A stretch of DNA of 64,000 nt, taken from assembly GCA_977017575.1 (NCBI GenBank), contig CDRNVI010000011.1, positions 248,001-312,000 on the forward strand, given 5' to 3'. Below the pieces are notes generated by a model, which saw nothing but the letters and a program-made list of their open reading frames with translations, had not been told where the DNA came from and did not search any database. Within the stretch, counting starts at the first letter, position 1; each line of letters begins with the position of its first letter. Shown here in pieces: positions 747-37,438 of this stretch. Position numbers and translations under genes: made by a program. The DNA comes from Paramoeba atlantica. Its lineage: Eukaryota > Protista > Discosea.

Positions 747-1150
747 TTCTGTACCTTGTTGACACCCCCCATGTGCCCCTTCTCCCAGCCACGCTCCCCG
801 CCACGCTTGCCACCGCGCGACCCGCCGCTCTCCCCGCCACGCTCACCACTGCGCTCCCCCCGCCCCACCCGCCGCGCTTCCGCCTCGCTACCCGACGCGC
901 CACCCGTAGCTCTCCCCACCGCATTTTCCGAGTATGGAGCTACCCGGCGTCAGCACAAGACGTCAAGAAACTGCGTCTCTTGCTCCCATCCTGAATGAAG
1001 GTCAATCGCGGCGATCTGCGATTGGCTATGCAAACTGCTCCGAAAGGAGCGGTGACGGCTCGGAATATACCTGAGCTGTCAGCCACCTCATCTGGATGGT
1101 TGAGGGCCCACAGCCTTTCGAGGCCAAATGGGCGGCTGACCATGACCATA
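747..1150 (+). mobile_element. SL-headed GC-rich non-autonomous retroelement, copy 1 (family C); tail region split by the insertion at 1159
   Basis: Starts with SL 3' end TTCTGTACCTTGTTG (747-761), then C-rich repeats and the box TGGAGCTACCCGGYGTCAGCAC..AAGACGTCAAGAAACT shared with 18645-18685, then a hairpin-rich segment; no TSD found. Confidence 0.55.
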
Positions 1151-1373
1151 CATGTATACTGTGACCCCCCCCTTTAATATGGACAGGGGGTATCCCCCCC
1201 CTTTATTATGGACAAATCCGACCGGGCGCCGCGCAGCGGCGCCAATTTTTTTTTTTGACGTACCCTTTTTTTTGTCTCTTTTTTTCTGTTTTTTAGGGTA
1301 TCTGTAGCTAGGTAATTTTATCAGCTTTCACATAGTTCGTCATGTTCATATATTTCAGTCATTTTTCAACCTA

Positions 1374-12645: not shown

Positions 12646-13812
12646 CTGCCCCCCCCTATTTACTATTGAGTGCTCAACCCCCCCTATTTAGTGTTGAATT
12701 TTGGGTTCGGTGCGTATAGGCGCCGCGAAGCGGCGCTTGATTTTTTTTCCATAACGCTTTTTTTCTTATCTTTGCTTGTTATTTGTGATTGTTTACTCTC
12801 CCTCTCATTCATTTTTACAAATAAATTTATAATTTATAGCAAAAATGAAAATTTAAATTTATGTTTATAAAAATCAATGAGAAAGCTTCCCAAGGATACT
12901 GATTTTTACATCGACTTTTTACATCAGTTAAGAAGTTTTAGTTCAGTTCCGGTAAGTAAACATAGAGTAAGTAATGAAAATGCGTCGAGAGAAGCGCTCT
13001 TCCTAACAACAAATTTATCTAAAAAAATTAACTACTGGTGGTAAATAAATTTACGAAGGCTTTTACAAAACAAAGAGGTGATCAGCACTTTCAGGGGAAA
13101 TTCCTCTTCATTTTCTTCTGCTGCATCAAGAACCGGTACCACTGTAAGCAGTTCGCTCGCCCGGCGAATCGCTTCAAGGATGTTTTCTGGCTTATTTAGA
13201 CTTTCCGGCGAAATTCCGACCTTACTCCACGCTTGAACATTGGCATGCCTCTGCCGATTATCATTAAGGTGGGCGTACGTTTTGATAATACTGTCAAGAA
13301 GCTGTGCTTTGCTTATTTTTGCTCCGATCGACCCAGTGTCACCGATTCGCTTTCCCTCAGTGTATTGACTCTGACAGTATTTCAGTAAGGCCATGGTTAG
13401 GTAGTCTAATAGTTTGGTTTCAAACGGTTAAAGAAACCCACATCACAAGGCTGAAGTCTTCATGTGCACTTTGCTGGAATGTATACAATTCGCAACCATG
13501 AAAAAGTGTCTTCGTTGCGCGCGATAAGTACAAAGCGCGTGGTATGTACGGAGCAGCAATCCAAGAGAAGAATCAAGGCAGGTTTTTGTTCAATTTGTAA
13601 AATATGTCCCCCCACAGGGCTTTCATACAAATGCCCCACAGCGTTCATAAAGTTGTATCCCCAACTGAGTGAAAAAAATACTATACTCATGGTTTTGAAA
13701 ACAATACGCCGCGAAGCGGCGCGCTTTTTTTTGAGAGGAGGAGATTTCTTACCCCCCCTATTTAGTGTTGAATTTTTCTGAATTTCACTCAACACTAAAT
13801 AGGGGGGGACAG
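12646..13812 (-). mobile_element. internally deleted pogo element with DDE_1 transposase pseudogene
   Basis: Imperfect TIRs CTGYCCCCCCCTATTTA..TTGAGTG; - strand LLLDCCSVHT...VYIPAKCT*RLQPCDVGFF with in-frame stops. Confidence 0.8.
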
Positions 13813-13971
13813 TAAATAATAACTGTGAGAGGGATTTACTAGCTTAGAATTCTGCAAAGTAGAGAGCTGATTACAACCCGCACTGCTTTGTATCAGAGTA
13901 GAATTTCCTATAACATAACGTAAATATCCTCTCTTATGCGCACTCCTTAGTTTCTTGGTTATTTTTATTCA

Positions 13972-14574
13972 ATGTTCTATTCCCTGTTTGCCTTTCCCAC
14001 AAAGGACGAAAGATGCAGTTCTACACGTTTAGGGCGAGTCCGTGCGTCATTACCTCAGGAATATAAACTGTTGAAGTTCATTGAAAATGTATCCAATCAT
14101 CATGCATCGTGGGAGGCCGGTACCCCAGCCTGCGAATGGGATGGAGTAACCTGTAATCAAGAAGGCAAAGTTATGGGAATTGATTGGGCAGCGCGCAAAT
14201 TAGAAGGTTCACTAGAATGGAAACACTTACCGGATACTCTTCTTAAATTGCGAATGTCATCGAACAAGCTCTCTGGTAGTATCGCGCTAGAAGATCTGCC
14301 ACCCCACCTGGAGTATCTCAGCTTAGGCAGCAATAACTTTACCGGAAGCATTAATCTTCAAGCTATGCCAAGAACAATGAAAAAGCTTCTGTTAGGTAAC
14401 AATGAGCTCTCCGGTTCTGTTAGTTTTTTTAACCTTCCAGAAGACTTATCTTTCCTATATTTAGCGGATAATGCAGGCCTTTGGGGTGATATGGCTCGAA
14501 AAAAACTCTGTGAAAAACTGAAACGTTCAATTTATATAGATCGAACCGATTTAAGAGAGATAAATTCAAAATAA
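13972..14574 (+). CDS. leucine-rich repeat protein with CEWDGVTC N-cap
   Basis: Paralogue of 3122-3832; LxxLxLxxNxxxG repeats. Confidence 0.85.
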   Translation: MFYSLFAFPTKDERCSSTRLGRVRASLPQEYKLLKFIENVSNHHASWEAGTPACEWDGVTCNQEGKVMGIDWAARKLEGSLEWKHLPDTLLKLRMSSNKLSGSIALEDLPPHLEYLSLGSNNFTGSINLQAMPRTMKKLLLGNNELSGSVSFFNLPEDLSFLYLADNAGLWGDMARKKLCEKLKRSIYIDRTDLREINSK

Positions 14575-15428
14575 CCGTCACAAGCCTACTGTAAAGCACC
14601 CAAAACGGCTGGGAAATATCTGGCATTCTTTGTAAATCGGTAAAGACACTACTTTCCACTACGTCTTTTTTTGTATCTTTTTGAAACAGTGTTTCGGAAA
14701 ATCTAATTATATTTCGGAAAAGGCGAATTCTCCTTCACTTCACCCATGTCTTCAACATCCTCAGGATTGTGTACTTATTTTCCGATCAAGGGCTGTAGAA
14801 GTGTTGCTTCCTAATCACGGGCTGCTGAAGGAACCTTCTTGTACTCCGCATGGTCCAAGTATTATGCGGGACGTATCCGGACGATCAAAATGTGCTGTTT
14901 TCATGAATCCCAGCGCGACCCGAGTCGCATGAAACGAGGAAAGCTCGAACAAATAGACTAGACAAACACATTCTAGAGGCCATAGGTGTGCTGATGGGGG
15001 GGGGGTCAAGTGTGTTGGGGGGGACGGCTGGCCACCAAAATCCAAATCATTCCAGATTGCTCCGGACGGTCACTGGCAAGCCAGACCCTTCACAGACAGA
15101 TTTTGAAATTCCGAGGCCGACATCGTCTATCAGTTTCCACTTTTCCAAGGCGGCACCAACGTGATGTTGGTGTGTCTGTACCTTGTTGAAAAAATTACTT
15201 TTCACATAAGCAAATGTATCGGGTTTTCTGCGACGGGGGCCACTGTTTTGGGGAAAGGACATAAACTTTTTACGGTGACAAATACTAAACCGGGGGACGG
15301 AATAATATTAAGATGCGGTTTATTATTAAGTTGCGGTTTATTATTAAGTTAGACAAGTTATTATTAAGCTAGACAGGTTATTATTAAGCTGGACAAGTTA
15401 TTATTAAGTTGTCAAGTTATTATTAAGT

Positions 15429-17718
15429 TTGTGTTTTTCGATGGGAGAAGGAGATTTTTTCGCCGAAAGTTTGACCCTTCATAGATTGGCTCAGGCAGTG
15501 TGTGACCCAACCTACGTTCAGGAAAACGATGAGATTATGTCCCTTGAGGATGATGAAGGGGTAGAAATGCTTGATGACTCGTCGGACGTAATCGGTAGCG
15601 GAAGCGATGGAGAAAGTGAAAGTGCTAGCGAGAGCGAAAGTGAAAGCAATTGTGAAAGCGAATGTGAAAGTGTGAATTCAAGCGAAGAAGAAATAGGATA
15701 TAATGTTGAAAGTGCGAGCGAAAGTAAAATTAAGGGTAATTCAACTTCGGATGATGAAGATAACGGAGCGGAGCTGACTGTTGGAGGGAAAGACAAGAAC
15801 GAGCGCAAAAAACAACATTGCGTAGTATATACGGGGCGTCATATAGACCAGGGTGTGCGCGGTCGAGTGGAATCCACGGCTAGACAAAAGCGTGTAATAT
15901 ATGAGGTGGCGGAGTGGCAAGAACTCAAAGTTTGAAGCACATGGTGCTCAGACGGCGAGTTCAAACCCACTCATCGCAATATTCCTGGCGGCCTCACTCT
16001 AAGAGGCTGGGCTGAGAACCGACTAGGCCCAGTACTCGGAGGACCGTCCCGGACCCTCCCCTCAGGGAACCAGCTCCCTTACCCGGCTTACACCTCTTGG
16101 GTAAGCCGTGTTGACGTACAATTCGTCGACGCAGCGTGTTGGCAACAGCACGTTGGTGCCGCCTTGGACAAGCGGAAACTGGTAGAGAACGTCGGCCTCG
16201 GAACTTCCAAATCTGTCTGTGAAGGGTCTGGCTTGCCAGCGACCGTCTGGAGCAACCCGGAATGATTTGGATTTGGATGATTTGGACGGCTAGACAAAAG
16301 CGTGTAATATATCAGAAGTGGATTTCCTGGTCGCAACAAGATCGAGATGCTTATGGACCACTCCGCAAGTTAAACTCTTGGATCGACAAGCGATTCCCTA
16401 AGAAATGTGTCCACATTTTTAACAAAAAGCAAGTTATGGCATACTCTAATATTCCTAGGCATAGTCAAAAGCGTAAAAGGCATGTAAAGGGGCATAAACT
16501 GAAATGGTTAAAACAACAATTGCATTATTTTATTCTTGGATCTCGAGAGAACGATGCTTTGATAACAACCGAGATGGTGCGCCAAGAGGCATTTCGCATG
16601 CTGAAAAAGGAAAACCGCAAATCATCAGAGCAGAACAAAGCACGGGGGATTACAAGAGTAAGCGAACGTAGGATAGGGAGATTCCTCCACTCTTACAAAT
16701 GGTCTATAAGATTAGTAAAGAGATCAACTCAGCTATCAAGTGAAGAGATAAAGCAAAGAATTCATTCCTTTCATACGTTTGCCTATCGTTGTCTTAAAAC
16801 AAAAAAGTTTCGTTCCGTTCTGAATTTTGATGAAATTCCCATATCATTTCGCGGGTCCATGAAATCTTTAAAAACAATTGCACAGCGAGGAGAAGAAGAT
16901 GTACGAGGGCGTTGCAATCCGAATGATATGAAGCGATGCGCAACGCTTATCTGCGGTGCTGGCGTGAAACTGGACAAAAATGGAAGTCCAACGAGTCATT
17001 TCTTTCTAAAACCTTTTATCGTGTGGAAAGGAGCTGGAAAAGGATCTAGTCACGAGATATTTGATGCAAGGACGGCTCGAGCTTTTACTCCGAAAGGTGT
17101 CGTGAACAAAGATTTTTTTCTCCAAGACTTTATTTCCTTTCTCAAACGTGAACTGGATATAAATGACGCAGGCCACACTTTAATTTATCTAGACTCCTGC
17201 CGATCTCACATAACAAGTGACGTTCTCGATGCGTTTGCCACTGTGGCTAACTGCTAATGTGCCATATTACCCCCTGCAACAACATCCTGGATCCAATGGA
17301 TTGATGTATTTTATGCTTCGTGGACAAACGCGAGCAAGTAAACATTTGGCACAGAGAACAACATATCCGTCGGACCGCCCGCCAAAAGAGACAATGGATG
17401 CATAATGCCGTTGCCCGAGCGCACGAACAAGTTATAAACCTCGACAACGACTCTCTTGATGAATCAGGGACCCTTTCCTCTTCTATGAACGTTGTTCAAC
17501 AATTCAAAAGCTTGGGGTATATCGACCCTTGTGATGCATCGTGGTCGCATGTGAAATGTTTAGAAGGATATGTCTTTGTTCCACCAAGCGATGACGATGA
17601 GAGAGACGAAGCTAAGAGAATCGAAGATGCCTTTAAGCGTGGGAAAAGCGTCCAGGCACGAAAATCATTCCAAGGACGGCTCGATAAATGGTGTAACCCA
17701 CGACGCTCCACCGAATAA
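15429..17718 (+). pseudogene. pogo transposase pseudogene with acidic N-terminus
   Basis: ORFs 15429-15935 and 16262-17257 join in frame (TARQKRVIY) once the SINE and one TSD are removed; in-frame TAA at 17255; later frameshift. Confidence 0.85.
15903..16285 (+). mobile_element. full-length tRNA-headed SINE-B
   Basis: A box TGGCGGAGTGG (15907), B box GTTCAAACC (15959), (GATTTG)n tail, 27-bp TSD ACGGCTAGACAAAAGCGTGTAATATAT (15876-15902 / 16286-16312). Confidence 0.9.
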
Positions 17719-19732
17719 AGGTAAAGAAAAGAAAGATTTATGAAGTTTATGAAGTCGGGTAAAGATTCAGATAAAAAAAATATTCTTAAAGATTGCATAC
17801 ATAAAAAAACAATTTGTTAATTTTATTACAAACTTAATAATAACCCGCTGACAAGTTAATATTAAGTTTCACAACGTTGACAGGTTATTATTAAGTTTGA
17901 CAGGTTATTATTAAGTTGTCAAGTTATTATTAAGTTTCAACAACTTAATATTATTCCGTCCCCCGGTTTACAAGCGATCGGGCACTTACGCAAGTTTTTT
18001 GAGAAAAACTTGGTTCGGCGAGATAAAATACCCCATGATGAAGGGATGGCCAATTGACCCGATGGGCGCGAATCGGATCAATATTGAAAAATTACCTTGT
18101 TAAAAATTTACACAACACCATTTTACCCTGCGCCCCCTTCTTCGCTGCCTCTTTTCCCCCCTCCTGCGCTGACTTCGTCGCCCCCCCCTTTCGCCCCCCG
18201 CCCTCCCCGCCCACTGCTCTGCGCGTCCTTCGCCGCCCCGCTCACCACCAGCGCCGCCCTCCTGCCCCCCCTCCTGCGCGTCCTTCGCCGCCCCGCTTAC
18301 CCACCACCAGCGCCGCCCTCCTGGCCCCCCTCCTGCGCTCCTGCCCCCCCTTCACCCCCTGCTTCGCCGCCCCTTTCATCCCCCTTCGCCGCCCTTTTCG
18401 CCGCCCCTTCACCGCCCCCTTCGCCCTCTTCGCCCCCCCTTCTCCGTCCCCTTCTCCGCCCCCTTCTCCGCCCTTCGCCGACCCCCTCGTCGCCCCTTCG
18501 CCGCCCCCTTCGCCGACTTCTCTCACCGCCACTCTCTCCGTCGCGCTCCCCGCCGCGCTCTCCCGCCGCTGCACTCTCCCCCGCCCTTTCGATCTCCACC
18601 GCGCCTCTTTTCGCCGCCCTTCGGCGCCCCTATCTCCCATGTTGTGGAGCTACCCGGTGTCAGCACAACAAGACGTCAAGAAACTAGGGCAGTTTCCACG
18701 CAACAATTTAAGGCAGAGTAGTGGATTAACTTGTTAATCCACGCTGGGGGGTAGCGAACCCCTCCTGCCCTGGAGCTGTTAATTATTGACTTCCTTTCAT
18801 AGGAGGATAAGTCGGGTGTGTGCCCTCTATGGTTGAGATTACTCCTGTGTTGGTACAGATGCTTCGAGCATCAGCATCCGCACAGCGGACCTAGGCTGGA
18901 ACTAGGGGGCCATATCTCTTCGGAGACAAATGGCCCTGTGTATTACTACTACTACTACTCCAAACGTGATGTTACCAACACGTTGCGCTGACGAATAGTA
19001 CTTCAACACGGCTTACCAACCAGCCAACACTGGGAAAATTTCCCAGTTAATGGATTTACAATTTTCTTCTGAACATACACCCTTCCTCCTAACCGCGCGG
19101 GGCTAATTTACAGAAAATTTTTCAAAAACAAACAGACTTTGTATTTTATGGATCCTAATCATTCGATCCCTATGACACCTCAGTACTTAGCTTTCGTTTG
19201 CTGTGTAAGGCACTTACCGATGTGAGCACGACAGCAAACGGGTTAGTTCTCATCTGTATTCTGAATCATGCAGCGATACAAAGAAATTATTGGAACTAAA
19301 TTGCACCTCCTTAAAGTCGTGTTAATCCCAGAAATTAACACGACTTTTGTTGACATAACTTAATTTCCCCCCTGCATTCGATCTCGAACTTAACAATACC
19401 TGCGTTGTTTTCGTAGTCTTATGACGACCTTCTTTGAGTTTTTCACCTGTTGAAACTTTGGTATCTTCCTCTCCTGTATCTTTTAACCTCTTCTTTTGCG
19501 GATGATTCGAACGCGCTTTTACTAGTATATTTGTATTAGGTCGAGCTGTTCGTGGAGGCTCTGGGGCAGAATCTTTGTTTTTCTGCTTTTTCGTATTTAA
19601 CACAGTTGAGGTCATGTTGCGCGTCGAATTCCTAGATCGTTTGACGGTATGTTGATCACTGCTTTCCTGATTATCGTTTTTCTTATACGTATTATCGTTT
19701 AATATCTTATCGTTAATATCTTATCGTTTTTC

Positions 19733-20573
19733 TTATATGTATTTTTGACAGTTTCCGCGTATTTTGGATTTTGCAGACAGCGGTTCCTTGAACGTTTTTT
19801 CAGTTGGCTGAGATTGTTCTGTATTGGTACCTTGTCGCTTACGCTGAGTTTTAGCTAAGCGGGGACCCAGGTTTTGACCCGTCTTTCTTTTCCCTTCCAG
19901 AAACAGCACGTCTCCCAAATACTTAACAGAAAGCTCGTGTTTTGCTAGCTCAAAAGCCTCTTTCGCCATGGAGTCGGCTGTGTCGTTGTATGAATTTTCG
20001 TTATGGGATTTTACTTTTACGCAATAAAAATTTCTGTTGGTCTTAATGTAAAAGTAAGCATCTTTTAGCAATTCCATTGTCTTACCGTCTTCGAAGGATT
20101 GGTAACCTATGAGCCTATACATGTATCTGTGAACAATTTCGTTAAAGAATTCCCATATATTCAAAATTTGTGTGTAAGATGACGTCTCCCTCGTACGATT
20201 GTGCACCTTTTATGGCCTCAATTGCTGCATATGATTCGATCGATTGAATTGAGCTGGAATATTCTAGAGGAGGTTTCATCCCCTTAAACTGTGTGCGCTC
20301 GCTTCCTCTCAGAATTACGATGCCGCATCCCTGGAGTTGTTGATTCTTTTTGTAAATAAGCCACCCGTCAGTGTAAATATGTGTTTCATTCTCTCTGATG
20401 GGAAACGCTGTTTTTCCTTCTTCGATGAATTGTAATTCCTTGTATCCGACCTGACGAGCAATTGACATATGATAGCATTTGCCCCAAGACGGCTGCCGCA
20501 AAGGGACTGAAATCGCCGATCCACGAGTTTGCGCTTTGTCTGGCACCTCGTTTTCGTGAGAATCAGCAGTCAT
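19733..20573 (-). pseudogene. LINE RNase H region, degenerate
   Basis: ETHIYTDG, ESYAAIEAI, YCVKVKSHNENSYNDTAD across frameshifts; a second RNase H relic lies on + at ~21640-22130. Confidence 0.75.
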
Positions 20574-22829
20574 TGAATGGATGAAGGGAACTAAGCATAA
20601 CGTTTCAATGATTTCCGTAAATGAAAATATTAGAAATTTACACCACTTTTACTCAACCTTTTTGGTCAAAAAAATGGTCAGTTTTTTTTCGGACAACTCT
20701 TTTCGTCATTTTTCAAAACGGCACTATAAGTGATGCGGCACTATAAGTTCACCGCGTCACTAAGAGCGGGGGGCCAAAGTATCTTTTGTCGAGTTTACCC
20801 TCGAGTCCTAACAAACTAAGGTAAAACTATGAATAATTCGGGTACTTCTCTACCTCTTTGATTAATCAACAGAGTGGCTGCCACTTCGTCGATGAATAAG
20901 CGAATAGGAAATTAAAAATACGCAATCCTGCGGAAGTGGCAGACATAGGTCCTCAGTGCACGACCCGCGCGCTGGAGCGCGCGAGTCGCCAAAAAATATA
21001 ATTATGTCCCAGGGCTACGCTCACAGTTGGGCCTTGCTCGCAAACGGGGACTTTTACCTCCAGAAGTCCAATCCAATCCAAAAAGGCCGATTTACATTGG
21101 CTGATAAAACTACTATTTTGTTTTTCGTGAAGACACCTTCCTCTTAGGTGAATCTTCCCTCTCATTATCCACCTTTTAGAGAAGCACTCTTGATTGTTCA
21201 TAACTTTTATCTTTTTCAACATTATGAGCATCACTCTCTTCGGACGATTTTACTCCAGTACTAGTGGGAAGTAATGTGCCCCTGTTGTTGACCGGTTCTC
21301 CCCCAGTGTTAGATATCTTGCGTTTGTTTTTGGCAACACGTTGAACATTAGCTTTTGGACGTAATATGCCCTTCTTTTGGGGAGAGTCTACAAGCTCCTC
21401 CGTATTCTTATTTAACGTTTTCTTCCTCCTAATTTATAGGGAAGGAACAGGCTTACCAGAGCAAGTGCTAACGCATCCGCTTTTTCATTGTGGGGATTAC
21501 CATTGTGTGATTTCACCTTACTCGCATAACTTTTTATATTCTTAGCTTGTAGGGAACGAATCTCAAAATCAAGGTCTTTTAATACCTTTTCATTTTGTAC
21601 TTTCTCATCCGGAACTAGACCGCCAACACAAGCTTCCCACTCAGCACCTGCAGTAGAAGCCTATGCGGCAATCGAGGCTCTTAATCAAGCGAATTATTAT
21701 GGCAACGACATCTTCCTACATACTGATTCTGAATACATATGGAATTTTTTCCACAACGTCATGCAAATATATCGTCTCATCGGGTTCTTAGCTTTTGAGG
21801 GAAACGAACTTCTTACACAGCTTCAGAAAACATATTCGAGCATTCGAGTTACTAAAAGGATTTTTTGTGTCAAAGTAAAAGCGCACAACGAAAATCCCTA
21901 CAATGACAGTGCGGATTCCCTGACAATTTAGTAGCACTTCGTCCTGCTAAATGTTTAAGATAGCGTTATAAAACACGAACTACAGAAGAAATTTCGTCGC
22001 AGGAACAAAAAAATAAGCACAACATTGTCCGGCCATCAAAGGACAATGCATCCTCGGGCAAGCGCTCAAGAAACGTACGACCGGAAGAAACGCAGAAAAA
22101 GCAAAAAGATTTACGCAGCGAGGGAAGAAAACCATGCACACTTCAAGACAAGACTGATAAAGCATTGAAGGAAAGATTTCCGCAAATAAAAAGGTCCCAT
22201 TCGTCAAGCGAAATCCATGATAACACCAATCATAAAGTTCTGAAATCAAAATTGGTAACTACACGCAAGTTGTCTACGAATGAAAAAGGTGGATCATCAT
22301 CAAAATGCACGGTGAAAGGGGAAAAGAAAAAAGGGGGAAAGAAGAAAGAAGTCCTACATAAAACGAGAGCTAATGAATCTGAAGAAAGCAGTGATAGGGT
22401 GCCTTAACAAAATATAATTGTATCTGGGCTCACTTATTGGAAAGTGTGGAAATGTTTCGTTGATGCTGTCGTGATTGCTACGGTTTAAAACCGGATATTT
22501 TAGCTGAGTACTAAAGTTCAATACTCACATACAATTGATGAGGAATTATGAAATTTTCAAAATGAGACGTTGTTTGAAAAGTTTCCGTAAAGAAATCGGG
22601 GCCAGAAGCGGAAAGAACTATACTATTTTTGATAAAACTGTAAAACTCTTAACTGAAGGAAACTTCAGTTACGGGTGCATCTATGTAAATATGAGCTTCT
22701 TTATCTTTAATAGGGAATGAGTCGCTACCTTCTTCCAAGAATTGTAAATCACATAAGTTTTCCTTTTCGACGCCACGCTTATAGAGACTTCCATTGTGAT
22801 GTTATAACGCGAGTATTATTCGGCAGTGG

Positions 22830-25345: not shown

Positions 25346-26149
25346 TTGCGCCTAAACGCGGCCAAATGTAAAGTGGCCACGAGGGAGCACAACCTCTTCT
25401 CTGAGTTTTCCGGAATCAGAATGATTCACTCCCCGGGGGGAGTTAAACTTCTGGGGGCTTTCATTTGGGAGTCGGAGGACAGGGAGGAAGAATGGGTCCT
25501 ATATAAGACCTCCAAAGTGATCTCCTTCCCTGAGAAATTGAAAGCTCTCAACAGGCAATGTGCTCTGCCTCTCCTAAGGCTCTTTTGGAGCCCACGATGG
25601 AACGAGCCGGGTAAGGGAGCTGGTTCCCTGAGGGGAGGGTCCGGGACGGTCCTCCGAGTACTGGGCCTATTCGGTTATCAGCCCAGCCTCTTAGAGTGAG
25701 GCCGCCTGGAATATTGCGATGGGCGGGCACAACCTGTGTGAGTTTCATCCTTTTTAACGATTCGTGCTCCATTTGTATAAATGTGGGTTTCATTTGGCCC
25801 GATTGGAAATCGTTGCCGCCCTTCTTCAATGCATTGTAGGGTTTCGTAGAACACCTTGTTTACCTCCTTTAGAAAAAGATTTCCATTGTTTTGAAGTTGT
25901 TTTAGTGTACGAGGTCCTGGGTTCAAGCTGGTGTTGAGGATTCTTGCGTATTGATGAAATAGTGTCAACATTCCTTCTTGGACGCAATATGAGTGTCACT
26001 TCTGGCGAGGATATGGGGTCAGAAGAAGAAGAAGGAGCCTTTGTCGTCTTCAACCTCTTTGCCGCTTGTGATTTTAACGGCCTTCGTTACGCCGAGAGAG
26101 CCAAGACATCAGCTTTGTCGCTATATTCGTTCCCATTATGAGATTTAAC

Positions 26150-26190
26150 GATAAAGATGCAATTTCTGTACCTTGTTGGTATGAGAAGCT
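26150..26190 (+). ncRNA. spliced-leader RNA fragment (exon 3' part plus first 12 nt of intron), not a full gene
   Basis: (TAAC)GATAAAGATGCAATTTCTGTACCTTGTTG|GTATGAGAAGCT resembles the kinetoplastid SL exon (...CAGTTTCTGTACTWTATTG) and the conserved intron start GTATGAGAAGCT. Confidence 0.85.
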
Positions 26191-26197
26191 AAAAAGG

Positions 26198-27011
26198 GGC
26201 GGAGGGGCAAGAATTCAAAGTTTGAAGCACATGGTGCTCAGACGGCGAGTTCAAACCCGCGGTGCGGGCGTAGTTGTTAGACGGTGGGCCTTACAACCTG
26301 CAGGTTGTGGGTTCGATTCCCGCTATCGACAAAACTCGCAACCTGGCGGCCTCACTACAAAGGGAAAGCGATCAGGAGTGCCTTCAAGGCCCACACCCAA
26401 ACCCGCCCCCCTGGAGGACCGACCCGGAACCGCCGAGCTGAACCAGGCCCCAGCGCAGCCGCTAAATTGGGAGATGCTTACGCAAAGGAGGCTTGAGACA
26501 CAGCCTACACGATGCAACGGGGTGGACGCCCGTCCTGGTAGCTACGGTTGGGTAGCCGTGCTCGGGCCGCAAGGCGTCGAGTGCCGTCTGGGAAGGGGGT
26601 AGCAACACGATGAAGGTCGGTGACCTGAGACTCTACCCTAACGGTTGGCGCTGCAGAGCCCTCCGTGTCTTCTTCTTCTTCTTCTTCTTCTTCTTCAAAC
26701 CCGCTCATCGCAATATTCCCGGCGGCCTCACTCTAAGAGGCTGGGCTGAGAACCAACTAGGCCAAGTACTCGGAGGATCGTCCCGGACCCCCCCCTCAGG
26801 GAACCAGCTCCCTTACCCGGCTTAAAACTCTTGGGTAAGCCGTGTTGACGTACAATTCGTCGACGCAGCGTGTTGGCAACAGCACGTTGGTTCCGCCTTG
26901 GACAAGCGGAAACTGGTAGAGGACGTCGGCCTCGGAACTTCCAAATCTGTCTGTGAAGGGCCTGGCTTGCCAGTGACCATCCGGAGCGATCCGGAATGAT
27001 TTGGATTTGGG
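26198..27011 (+). mobile_element. SINE-B copy containing nested SINE-A
   Basis: Head 26198-26260, resumes at 26694; 15-bp TSD ATTATGAGATTTAAC (26135-26149 / 27012-27026). Confidence 0.9.
26261..26693 (+). mobile_element. tRNA-headed SINE-A
   Basis: tRNA(Val)-like head with B box GGTTCGATTCC (26310), (TTC)n tail, TSD TTCAAACCCGC (26250-26260 / 26694-26704). Confidence 0.9.
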
Positions 27012-28643: not shown

Positions 28644-30521
28644 GTGGAGTTGGCGGAGTGGCAAGAACTCAAAGTTTGAAGCACATGGTGCTCAGACGGC
28701 GAGTTCAAACCCGCTCATCGCAATATTCCCGGCGGCCTCACTCTAAGAGGCTGGGCTGATAACCAACTAGGCCCAGTACACACACACACAAACACACACA
28801 CACACACACACACACACAACACTGAAGGCATTACCCTTCAGTTGAGAAACTGTTAAAGCTTCACTAAATATATGCTCCTAAAGCTAGAACTAATAGAATT
28901 TGATACCCACACCATCGTGCGCCCTATTGGTAGATATATTTTTCCATTACTCTCGTTTTGAGTACACCCCTGAGTTTACAGGTTGGATGTTCGGAAATGT
29001 TTCTTTTCGCTTTGTTCAAATTCTGCGTTAGCAAGCGAAGACGCGGTGTCTAGTAACTTACCTTTTCTCTTACGCCGCATCCGACGCTCCTCACGGGTTG
29101 GGTTCGTGGTTTTCTTTTCTAATGTTTTAAGGCACGCTATCCACACATATTCGGAGTGGGCCGATTCATTTCCTCGGTTCAGGTTTTTTCTTCGTTTAGA
29201 AATAGGTTCCGAACTAACGAGCTTTTTACTTAAGGTATCCGCTTCTTCATTCCATTTATTCCCACAATGGCCTCGGACCGTAATAAAGGTGATGGTTCTC
29301 CCCTGACAATGCGCTGATCGAATAAAACTATCCAGAAAACTAAGCAGATCGGAATTCGAGACTTCAAAACCAACCAGTCGATCTTTCCTTCGGCGCATAT
29401 TTACAAAATTCCACACATAATACGAATCTGTGTGTACAACAACATTTTCAACTTCTTTTAGTTTACTCAAACCAAATAGGGCAGCGTGAATTTCGGCTCT
29501 TTCAGGAGATTTGGTTTCCAGGTAGGATAGGGAGGACGAAAAACTTTCATGCTTCTCTGCGTTTACTATTACACATCCAACTGCTACCTTTACCCTTGTG
29601 TCCGTATCATCGGAGATAGAAGCATCCACGTACGCATGCATTTCCTCCGGTTTTACAGGAAAAGGGGTTTCCCCTTCTTCGATAAATTGTAATTTATTAC
29701 ACACTGTTTCTTTTAAAGCGTTTTTGTATGCTAGTTTCCATTTAGGACTTTTGTAGCCAATATAAGACTCTGAGGGCTCGAGTCTCTCTGAGAGGTTTTC
29801 AATTAATTTGGCCCAGTGTGCGCTATCAGAGGCATATACAAGCATTTCTTCCATCTCAATCCCAAGGTCTTGTGCGCATGCTTCGGAAGGCGATGGAAAT
29901 CTCGCCTTTTCCCGGGAGCCCCATCCTACTAAAGAGCGGTAGATCTCAGAGTGCCTAATTTGGTGACCCACAAGGCGCGCCCGATTAATACGATGTATTG
30001 TATTGAAATGTAGCGTGTTGCGGTACAGAGATTCAATAGGATAACAATGCCCATTCTCATCAACTCCTACGGCGTCACACACGATGCGCCTCATGTTGTT
30101 TACTTGTACTTCAACGTTTCTCACCTGCGATGCCGATATCACCATGGATGACGTACCGTAGTTTAGTATGGGATAGACAAGGGTGTCAAAAATTCGAAGC
30201 TTAGCCTTTACGCGAAGAGGCGAGATCCAAATACCTCGTAGTTTGCTAAGACACGCCCACGCCAAACTCGCCCAGTACTCGGAGGATCGTCCCGGACCCT
30301 CCCCTCAAGGAACCAGCTCCCTTACCCGGCTTAAAACTCTTGGGTAAGCCGTGTTGACGTACAGTTCGTCGACGCAGCGTGTTGGCAACAGCACGTTGTT
30401 GCCGCCTTGGAAAAGCGGAAACTGGTAGAGGACGTCGGCCTCGGAACTTCCAAATCTGTCTGTGAAGGGTCTGGCTTGCCAGTGACCATCCGGAGCGATC
30501 CGGAATGATTTGGATTTGGAT
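28644..30521 (+). mobile_element. SINE-B split by a LINE (halves 28644-28779 and 30270-30521)
   Basis: Own TSD AGTGACGAG (28635-28643 / 30522-30530) inside an older LINE RT relic (LDSSL|SAATKLRLFD). Confidence 0.85.
28780..30269 (-). mobile_element. 5'-truncated LINE of the (GT)n-tail family (RT C-terminus plus RNase H; ORF 28976-30265)
   Basis: TSD GCCCAGTAC (28771-28779 / 30270-30278); HAYVDAS, ERAEIHAA, VHTDSYY, RGHCGNKWNEEAD; 3' hairpin ACTGAAGG/CCTTCAGT then (GT)n. Confidence 0.9.
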
Positions 30522-30949: not shown

Positions 30950-32211
30950 AAGGGAGTCGATAAAAAAATTCAACTGAGGACGAGAGGCCCGATTTTTTAG
31001 TCTCAAAACGAAACTCAGTTTTTTATCCCCCTTTTTGTCGAGGGGCAAGGGCCATTTTGCGGGGGTTTTAACATTGTTGTTGGTAGCGGGGTCTTCCTCT
31101 GTCGCAGAAAACCGAAAAAACCAACCAGGAGAAAAATGCAATAAATACACTTCCAAAGACCGATAAAGAAATGTTACCAAACGAACAAAAGAGATCCAGA
31201 TCTACAGGAGAAGCTCCAAAGAAACTGCGAAAGAGATCACAGAAACAGAAACTGCCAGCTTCAAAACTATCACCAGAATTTTCAACCCCCAAGAAGATGC
31301 AAACGAAACGAAAAATGCCAACTCAAGAGATCCAGGAGTTGGAATTATCTAAGGCTTCTGTAAAATATGAAGGAGAAAACAGTGAGTAACCCCCCCAGCC
31401 TCCCCCCACCCCATCTCCCCCCCCCGCCAGCATATTGTCCGATTTTATTTCTTTTCTTTTCTGCAAGATGCATTTCGTTTTTTATGTGTTTGATGTTGGT
31501 TTGGTTGAAAACTAATTTAGTATACCGTGAAGCTGGTGTACCGCTCGTCTCGCAATTTCAGGTAAGTTGTCTCAAACTAGCTAGGTAGTAACAGTAAAAC
31601 TAGCCACGCCCAGCTAGGAAGATAAAAAAAAAGCTAGGAAGATAATCACGGCTAATTAACCTAAGGCAACGTTGCGACGATAACCTAACCTAAGTGTGAA
31701 AATTAGTATGGCAAACAGTTTAACCTCCTTAAATGATCTATATCAGTGTTGTTGTTGTTCTTGAAAGAGTCCGTGCTAACCCCCTTGGTGCGACATCCGT
31801 CATTACGGATTGTGCCGATGATATCGGCTGTCGCATCGAGGGCTGTATCTCTGCTCCAACGAGCGCATGAACATCAAATTGTCGCAGCGACGACGACTTT
31901 CTGTACCTTGTTCATTTTATTATTAAATAAGACTTTTCATGGCAGCAGGGGGGAGCCCCCCCATACGTGGTTTGTCCCCCCAAACCACAGACGTGGTTTG
32001 TCCGCAAGCTCGGTGTATTCAGGCTCATGGTGGTACAGAAGTACCGCCTTCCCGATCGCATCAAGTTTAGGCAGTTCCTCTGCTCGGCCTAACGGATTAA
32101 ATTTTGCCACACTTTGGGTTGCAGGTGAGGAGGTAAATTTTGGTTCTTTCTCGTCCATCCGCTTTCTTAGTTCATACGTAGTTCATATGGGCAAAACCCC
32201 TCTTGTTGACT

Positions 32212-36557: not shown

Positions 36558-37438
36558 AGTCAACAAGAGGGGTTTTGCCCATATGAACTACGTATGAACT
36601 AAGAAAGCGGATGGATGAGAAAGAACCAAAATTTACCCCCTCACCTGCAACGTGTGGCAAAATTTAATCCGTTAGGCCGAGCAGAGGAACTGCCTAAACT
36701 TGATGCGATCGGGAAGGCGGCAAAAGCGCTAGAGGCAAAGGAACGACAACCACTGTCTACTGAAGAGATAGCTAGGGCCATCGATCAACTTCACCCAAAG
36801 GTCTTTCAGGTTTATAAACATTTACCGGCAAAAATCTAAGGACATTGAAAAGCAGGGTGAAAGGGAACCGGTTTTGCGCCAAAATTTTAAATTTTTCTAA
36901 AAAGACTTATAATTATTTTAAAAAGTGTTTTTGTATTATCTGATACTTTTTCGGCCACTTTGGACATGAAATGTCGGCAGTACACTGATTTTTCTTGTAC
37001 TGACAACAGGTCATACACATATTTGGCAGCGGCAAGCGAAAGGGACATTATTCAACGACTAGCGGACCACGAGTTTGTATACCAACGTGTAGAGTCTCCT
37101 AAAAGCCATGGGCCATGAGTAAGGTAGAATATTCTATTAGCGGTGAGATAAGAAAAGCGTAAGATTTCTTGGCAATTTTTTAGATATTATTTTTGACGCA
37201 AAATCGGTTCCCTTTGACCAAAAGCAACTTAACTGACAGGGCTCGCCAGAGGATCCGCCAGGCTGGACACGCGAACTTCTTATACCGCTCCTAGGTGGCC
37301 AGAGTATCGTTGCCTTGGATAGTGCTGCGAAACCCCCGAAACGCTCAGCTACGGGAAGTCTTAACCAGCTCCACTCTGACCTTGCTGCTCAAGGAGGGCC
37401 TTTCCTTAGAAGGATCACCAGCCTGCCGACCTATAGCA

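Follow-up and report, generated by a model that had tools for sequence, protein, structure and literature searches.

DNA-encoded relics of the spliced leader (SL) mark recycled cDNAs among dinoflagellate retrogenes, where they are sometimes stacked (PMC5585692, PMC12014239). Trypanosomatid retroposons are known for Pr77, a 77-nt internal promoter at their head, whose transcripts are unspliced (PMC1874656, PMC8190864). A third kind of tie to the leader is found in SLACS, CZAR and CRE1-2, autonomous elements at a fixed position in SL RNA genes (PMC12278014). The locus considered here lies in a 64,000-nt stretch of DNA (the window: positions 248,001 to 312,000 of contig CDRNVI010000011.1, assembly GCA_977017575.1, Paramoeba atlantica), in an assembly of 45.7 Mb and 248 contigs; all coordinates are window positions unless a contig is named. 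Positions 15169-18962 probably represent a copy of a non-autonomous, promoter-less, non-LTR (LTR: long terminal repeat) retroposon family copied from trans-spliced RNA. Full-text literature searches of an incomplete collection found no description of SL-headed retroposons in kinetoplastids or diplonemids, nor of the exact SL sequence.

The insertion itself is plainly delimited. The exact 11-bp sequence AACGTGATGTT stands at 15158-15168 and again at 18963-18973 (direct reading and repeat comparison), and so brackets 15169-18962. Both flanks belong to one minus-orientation copy of a tRNA-headed short interspersed element (SINE), here called SINE-B: its tail-side 3′ half occupies 14960-15168 and ends in the left copy of the repeat, and the right copy begins the rest of the split SINE (18963-19040), as judged by alignment with a paralog and by direct- and inverted-repeat comparison. 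That paralog, in opposite orientation at 15903-16285, is uninterrupted across the target site, where it reads CACCAACGTGCTGTTGCCAACACG (context ...GGCACCAACGTGCTGTTGCCAACACG...); the flank alignment with its reverse complement runs on into 18963-19030 with no gap at the insertion point. The empty site is therefore known; the split is clean and the repeat is a true target-site duplication (TSD), both as the original prediction held. The duplication is 11 bp, possibly 13 if CCA and one extra A are counted. Six extra bases, GGTGTG (15169-15174, plus strand), separate the left TSD from the SL piece; they are missing from the empty-site paralog, and may be untemplated or slippage-derived.

After this filler comes TCTGTACCTTGTTG (15175-15188, plus strand), followed directly by AAAAAATTAC and not by GTATGAG, which carries the GT donor. 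The 14-mer is the real 3′ end of the spliced-leader exon. Genome-wide, 40 SL RNA gene copies carry TCTGTACCTTGTTGGTATGAG, mostly in head-to-tail arrays of ~2.56-kb units on two contigs, and all 40 read ...GATACAGTTTCTGTACCTTGTTG|GTATGAGAAGC; the exon ends ...ACAGTTTCTGTACCTTGTTG|GTATGAG, that is, ...TCTGTACCTTGTTG|GTATGAG. The stem-rich intron continues in 36 of the 40; in two, one of them the window's own copy at 26165, GATGCAATT stands just before. The core of the leader, ACAGTTTCTGTAC, we take to be of kinetoplastid/diplonemid type. The best outside match to a housekeeping protein, alpha-SNAP, in the protein collection is 31% identical. Thus the leader does end in CTGTACCTTGTTG, as the original prediction required, and the element does start with the leader's 3′ end without a donor after it, once the six bases between TSD and relic are allowed for. 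An Rfam scan of the SL repeat gave no SL family match, only 5S: the array unit (contigs 97 and 3; places L019 and L001) also holds a 5S rRNA gene (99 bits).

An SL piece at the edge of a retroelement might simply be target DNA. Kinetoplastid CRE-clade elements do insert into SL genes (PMC12278014), and this genome has many reverse transcriptase (RT) genes; SLACS, CZAR and CRE1-2 are, like the present family, kinetoplastid non-LTR elements physically tied to SL sequence. Here, however, the SL piece, reaching to the exon's last base, lies inside the TSD at the 5′ terminus of the inserted, RNA-derived copy; the insertion struck a SINE, and the intact paralog of that SINE is free of SL sequence; no SL intron follows downstream; and the retroposon carries no RT open reading frame (ORF), the only ORFs being those of a transposon nested in it. 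L063, another full copy, sits in unrelated DNA with its own 11-bp TSD, TACCTTAGATT, directly adjoining the first relic. The empty-site alignment refutes insertion into an SL gene for the studied copy, and as an account of the family it is extremely improbable.

The interval is not a single unit. It was first described as one 3.8-kb non-coding element, and that description has to be given up: 15169-18962 is a nest, formed by a retroposon of ~0.9 kb and a 2,885-bp insert (15199-18083) that is foreign to the family and contains a terminal-inverted-repeat (TIR) transposon with a 331-aa ORF and a SINE. With the insert removed, 909 nt remain: filler, 14-nt SL relic, leader, C-rich body, 3′ domain and (TAC)5 plus TCCA. 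The C-rich body (18112-18640, plus strand; 58% C, 5% A) consists of degenerate 12-14-nt CCGCC-type repeats; it has homologs in L058, L063, L071 and at window 770-930, and its length differs among copies. The conserved 3′ domain (18641-18943, plus strand) folds into several hairpins, the last being GGGCCAT..TCTC-TTCG-GAGA..ATGGCCC (minimum free energy -114 kcal/mol, fold z = -2.65). A microsatellite tail follows on the same strand (18944-18962), (TAC)5 at 18944-18958 and then TCCA; the predicted ending in hairpins and (TAC)n is thus borne out. The family plan is accordingly an SL relic, a short variable leader, a C-rich body, a conserved hairpin 3′ domain and a microsatellite tail.

At least 40 places in the genome match the 3′ domain, at 72-99% identity. 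Several are cut on the 5′ side at varied points, yet every one closes with short tandem repeats, of the type (TAC)n, (AAAC)n, (CCAA)n, (CCCAA)n or (TCCA)n. TSDs and 5′ truncation both occur in the family, the truncated tail copies including L065, L073, L088 and L089. TSDs, 5′-truncated copies, a conserved 3′ domain and microsatellite tails together point to target-primed reverse transcription by a ‘stringent’ long interspersed element (LINE). Stringent SINE/LINE pairs with RTE, CR1 or I-like tails share the conserved 3′ hairpin and microsatellite, the truncated copies and TSDs of about 11 bp; the present family differs in having no Pol III head, and a LINE with a matching tail was not found in the places searched. 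The sense strand of the 909-nt retroposon has neither A nor B box, as had been predicted, and so lacks the internal Pol III promoter of a classical SINE; the nested SINE at 15903-16285 does match both boxes. A sister element at 748-1165 (plus strand, by sequence comparison) has the same SL 14-mer, another leader (ACACC), a C-rich body, the common GGAGCTACCCGGCGTCAGCACAAGACGTCAAGAAACT box and a different 3′ domain; the family is therefore modular.

It is the census of heads that bears most directly on where the SL piece comes from. The motif CCCCATGYRCCCCTTCACCCC, which marks heads and lies just within the C-rich body, is present at ~65 places in the genome. Of the 27 true heads that were read, 26 have between one and six fragments of the leader's 3′ end immediately upstream. 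These heads hold 68 fragments in all, which begin at various points between SL positions 23 and 33; 46 stop at base 38, the last of the exon. Relic length is 6-16 nt, never more (the longest per head, 9-16 nt), and stuttering runs are frequent. CTTGTTG within 30 nt of the head motif gave 51 pattern matches, representing at least 43 distinct heads genome-wide; the reversed-pattern control gave none. A genome-wide pattern search found no head in which the SL extends through ACAG, and among the family copies no relic runs on into the SL intron or carries SL gene promoter sequence.

The exact exon end is joined to at least 15 different, unrelated leaders. Those that follow the exon's last G include ATCTTTTCAGTCAATTTC, ACCGATAATCAAATC..., AATTTCCCCCATGC..., T(9-14)CTTTCTGAGTTTC, ATCTA, ACACC, ATTACTAAAAACATACC and ATTTTTTCTCC...; family leaders also include ATCTTTTCAG... 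and ACCGATAATC..., and that of the studied copy starts AAAAAATTAC... Joining of so many leaders precisely at the last base of the exon fits trans-splicing at different acceptors and does not fit an inherited internal motif. Copies that share a leader (L095, L107, L110 and L112) differ in their relic sets: the innermost relic is CTTGTTG in L112 (7 nt), TACCTTGTTG in L095 and L110 (10 nt) and TGTACCTTGTTG in L107 (12 nt), so that the head is at least partly made anew at each insertion. L095 reads TGTACCTTG CTGTACC TGTACCTTG CTGTACCTTGTTG TACCTTGTTG.

The alternative to renewal is that a fragment of an SL gene was captured long ago and fixed in the family, as tRNA and 5S sequences head SINEs, with the variety at the 5′ end produced by slippage and indels. 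This would account for the presence of the piece in 26 of 27 heads, for a length that never exceeds 16 nt, for the inner relic pairs common to some copies (L095 and L110, for example) and for the failure to find an SL-less copy with an acceptor. A single ancestral capture is disfavored because it would need an indel exactly at the exon boundary each time, once for every one of the 15 or more unrelated leaders that begin just after the last G. It would also have to explain copies with the same leader but innermost relics of 7, 10 and 12 nt (L112, L095, L107), and a captured gene fragment that left no intron or promoter sequence in any copy. Moreover, unrelated ORF-bearing elements of the same genome bear full SL heads: the SL 14-mer has 813 copies outside SL genes, many of them within near-complete leaders (CTTTAACGAT...GTTG) that stand behind A-runs and before long ORFs, which shows the RNA route to be active in this genome. 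An inherited head is therefore very unlikely.

The preferred reading, that each copy derives from trans-spliced RNA, can be set out as a series of steps. Read-through transcription by RNA polymerase II (Pol II) would make the family RNA; the host SL would be added by trans-splicing at any acceptor upstream of the body; a LINE reverse transcriptase recognizing the hairpin and microsatellite 3′ end would copy the RNA at a nicked target, which at the studied locus was a SINE, yielding the 11-bp TSD; and the enzyme would stop 6-16 nt into the SL, often re-copying the same stretch to leave stuttered relics. Before or after insertion, the 5′ leader would have received another 2.9 kb, made up of unique sequence and a pogo-like TIR transposon that itself contains a SINE. 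The stop within the leader could have several causes: the SL-capped RNA may carry a block, the enzyme may be less processive, or a 5′ RNA primer may be lost. Other SL-headed families in the genome keep nearly the whole leader. An SL-capped-RNA origin of a promoter-less, SINE-like element appears well supported by the family census. Chances are about even that the family has no promoter of its own at all, depends wholly on host polycistronic transcription and SL trans-splicing for a capped 5′ end, and is copied by a partner enzyme that halts, stuttering, within the last 16 nt of the leader.

Several observations weigh against this reading. The first 22 nt of the SL are absent from every head, and the head could be partly inherited rather than renewed at each round. 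The only candidate RNA run, when compared with 15000-19100, gave no match, and trans-splicing of the family RNA is inferred from DNA. The 3′ domain alignment is highly conserved in sequence with little covariation (one pair with double changes). A LINE sharing the 3′ domain was not found by a BLAST search of the window with the tail, by an ORF scan of the 1.5-kb flanks of 14 tail matches, or by comparing coordinates with 150 of 1,851 RT candidates. No source for the leader of the studied copy exists elsewhere in the assembly. The original prediction had named as its own undoing a 14-mer that was an ordinary internal part of the family, with no SL-less source copies: the first half is contradicted by the 15 or more leaders; as to the second, no copy turned up that lacks the SL, has a pyrimidine tract with AG and could serve as the source, retrocopies not keeping such acceptors.

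A second SL-like junction, reported as decayed at 18093, is real as sequence: 18093-18111 reads TACCTTGTTA AAAATTTAC, the SL-like part being TACCTTGTT at 18093-18101. A near-identical copy of the region on contig 24 (C24) has G at 18102, which gives a perfect TACCTTGTTG. That copy (C24:9638-16424) is collinear with window 13680-20473 and 98.7% identical to it, with 56 mismatches and 10 gaps over 6.8 kb, flanks included; it was rejected as an independent insertion on these grounds, and by its sequence appears to be the other haplotype or a recent segmental duplicate. Many other repeat matches come in pairs of the same sort; both haplotypes, or else large duplications of recent date, seem to be present in the assembly.

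The junction at 18093 had suggested two cycles of recycling. That is, an older copy (TACCTTGTTG, AAAATTTAC and body) would have been transcribed along with ~200 nt of flank upstream, which may already have contained the TIR transposon, then trans-spliced again at an acceptor within this flank and re-retroposed; the outer 14-mer and inner 9-10-mer would record two SL additions. The element does contain two pieces of the SL end, with ~200 nt of unique DNA between them if the transposon is discounted; the inner piece is perfect in the C24 copy; a pyrimidine-rich spacer of 12 nt separates two relics in L063; and stacked relics of this kind occur in dinoflagellate retrogenes (PMC5585692, PMC12014239). 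Yet the likeness of the two junctions extends past the SL. The left copy of a direct repeat, TTGAAAAAATTAC (15186-15198, plus strand), overlaps the SL end and includes the first 10 nt of the leader; the right copy, TTGAAAAATTAC (18084-18095), is followed by CTTGTTA AAAATTTAC, the two together filling 18084-18111 on the plus strand (direct reading and repeat comparison). Thus TTGAAAAA(A)TTAC stands at both edges of the 2.9-kb insert, a similarity not expected from two independent splicing events. Two cycles, or transduction of 5′ flank, would also need a source locus with the same 200 nt beside a family copy, and the assembly has none.

Nor do the relics of the family at large behave as records of serial splicing. 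Neighboring relics abut at 13 of ~22 junctions and are mostly 1-5 nt apart at the others; no AG precedes them, and some are also cut on the 3′ side, features that repeated trans-splicing does not explain. Multiple relics look like the work of a reverse transcriptase slipping or jumping on a short template, and two-cycle recycling of the studied copy is unlikely. The second junction looks like part of a short duplicated stretch on both sides of the 2.9-kb insert, produced either as a 12-13-bp TSD or by a template switch guided by microhomology. The score of the non-SL part of this repeat was reached in 283 of 2,000 unconstrained shuffles; the reading of the 2.9 kb as an insertion with a TSD therefore rests on the exact position of the repeat, not on statistics. 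Before that insertion the subfamily would have read SL relic, AAAAA(A)TTAC, ACAACACC and body, without the 2.9 kb.

The comparison with described systems can now be drawn more closely. As in dinoflagellate retrogenes, genomic retrocopies carry at their 5′ end the SL, which normally only RNA receives, and it marks passage through trans-spliced RNA. The copies in question there (PMC5585692, PMC12014239) are of protein-coding genes, in contrast to the multi-copy, non-coding mobile family seen here, with its LINE-type 3′ domain, microsatellite tail and TSDs. Stacking there comes from renewed splicing at an AG within the SL once it is integrated; here relics of 6-16 nt, with starts scattered over SL positions 23-33 and spacers mostly of 0-5 nt, stand together without a preceding AG, in the manner of stutter. 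The host, too, differs, being here a euglenozoan. RIME and NARTc, the partners of ingi and L1Tc in trypanosomatids, resemble the family: they are kinetoplastid retroposons, short and non-coding, not of Pol III type, which lie between TSDs and are mobilized by a LINE. They differ in a Pr77 start and a poly(A) end, where the present family has SL relics with variable leaders and a hairpin domain with a microsatellite (the comparison is of element plan). SLACS, CZAR and CRE1-2 differ in being autonomous and fixed in SL RNA genes, with the SL as target DNA (PMC12278014); here the SL piece belongs to the RNA copy that was inserted, and the target sites are unrelated.

What sets the family apart within its own genome is the combination of truncated, stuttered relics and many independent SL junctions, as against the elements with full SL heads. 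Trypanosomatid retroposons with their internal promoter would have in this deep-branching, SL-using relative a counterpart in which a non-coding family and many coding ones carry SL in DNA. This suggests that mobile elements can dispense with a promoter in a cell that trans-splices all its Pol II transcripts, a parallel in an unrelated lineage to the cDNA recycling of dinoflagellates. The relics would then form a dated, countable record of the RNAs that reach a reverse transcriptase. If the reading is true, the copies record the use of trans-splice sites and also a block inside the SL of the mature RNA (for instance a modification, a cap complex bound there or an RNA primer left in place); the sharp 16-nt limit points to a testable property of the SL-capped RNA or of the enzyme. 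Taken with the full-SL LINEs, it would mean that a whole retroelement community has swapped internal promoters for trans-splicing.

The insert in the leader has a layered structure of its own. It consists of 87 nt of unique DNA, the TIR transposon and 113 nt of unique DNA, the unique parts being found elsewhere in the assembly only in the collinear C24 copy. The transposon (15286-17970, plus strand) is bounded by 30-nt TIRs (15286-15315 and 17941-17970) with 97% complementarity, each with TA on its outer side, and has arrays of ~20-nt subterminal repeats. It encodes the 331-aa ORF (16262-17257) and, upstream, an acidic ORF; on its upstream side the 331-aa ORF is broken by the SINE. A Pfam scan of the ORFs of the element gave no match. 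Language-model features of the 331-aa ORF led to HTH_Tnp_Tc5 and DDE_1 clusters (score 0.92, 179-184 shared features), a lead and not a proof, and the transposon is probably of pogo/Tc5 type.

The SINE that interrupts the transposon (15903-16285, plus strand) is tRNA-headed, with an A box and a loose B box, as identified by direct repeat and alignment; ARAGORN found no tRNA in the window. The DNA contigs from a public run connect 15903 with 16314, and other copies of the transposon must therefore be free of the SINE. The four DNA-type public runs, from one study, gave contigs too fragmented in repeats to reveal presence/absence alleles, and a hole at 15137-15273 is uninformative. The TSD of this SINE is unusually long, 27 bp (15876-15902 and 16286-16312) as against 11 bp in the C-rich family, which suggests different enzymes or a different nick spacing.

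Full-SL heads show stutter of their own. Many ORF-bearing elements (L031-L060, on contigs 1 and 2) open with a near-complete SL straight after an A-run. Repetition occurs at either end of the leader: CTTTAACGATAA before a full SL in L037, a full SL followed by TACCTTGTTG in L038 or by CTTGTTG in L060, and a partial SL, TTAAAAA and a full SL in L041-L043. In the window, TTTCTGTACCTTGTTC at 31898-31913 is a 16-nt SL relic with one mismatch, and an ATG lies 25 nt downstream (ATGGCAGCAGG...); the start of L050 resembles this head, and part of the 5′ region is found inverted at 36590-36720. The N-terminal 480-490 aa of ten SL-headed ORFs were scanned for a division in which truncated-SL heads belong to APE-type LINEs and full-SL heads to others, and no diagnostic Pfam domain was found there. 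On contig 1 (9700-25500; L031-L034 and L066-L069) lies a 5,093-bp tandem repeat, each unit of which holds a full-SL-headed sequence and, ~180 bp off on the opposite strand, a 5′-truncated copy of the 3′ domain of the C-rich family with an (AAAC)n-like tail.

Whole SL RNA has also been retroposed. Dispersed copies of the unspliced molecule, exon and intron, are found at C6:27083 (L003), C83:133023 (L015), C87:74386 (L016) and C87:106944 (L017). They terminate ...GGGGCTTAAAAA and begin (C)TTTAACGAT or TTAACGAT, without the first 3-5 bases of the array genes (AACTTTAACGAT), a shortfall that fits a reverse transcriptase halting at a modified cap structure. At window 26135-26200 a tRNA-headed SINE is fused to a truncated copy of SL RNA, which comprises the exon, with two changes in it, and 12 nt of intron before A-rich sequence; contig 24 (L008) has the same arrangement.

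The LINEs of the window have 3′ ends in the style of the family tail. Those of RTE-like type end in a hairpin and (TG)n, but with a different sequence. A LINE bearing RNase H has a small hairpin and (TG)n at ~28800-28870; on the minus strand of 28790-28870 the hairpin reads ACTGAAGG...CCTTCAGT before (TG)n, with a SINE copy directly after. Near 22650, downstream of a second RT ORF, this hairpin is present again, there without a microsatellite. A whole-genome search for RVT_1 gave 1,851 first-look candidates; the 150 that were scored all had E values of ~1e-29 or lower, many of them in open frames of 1,000-2,800 aa. The retroelement load is very large for a 45.7-Mb genome, and apparently young.

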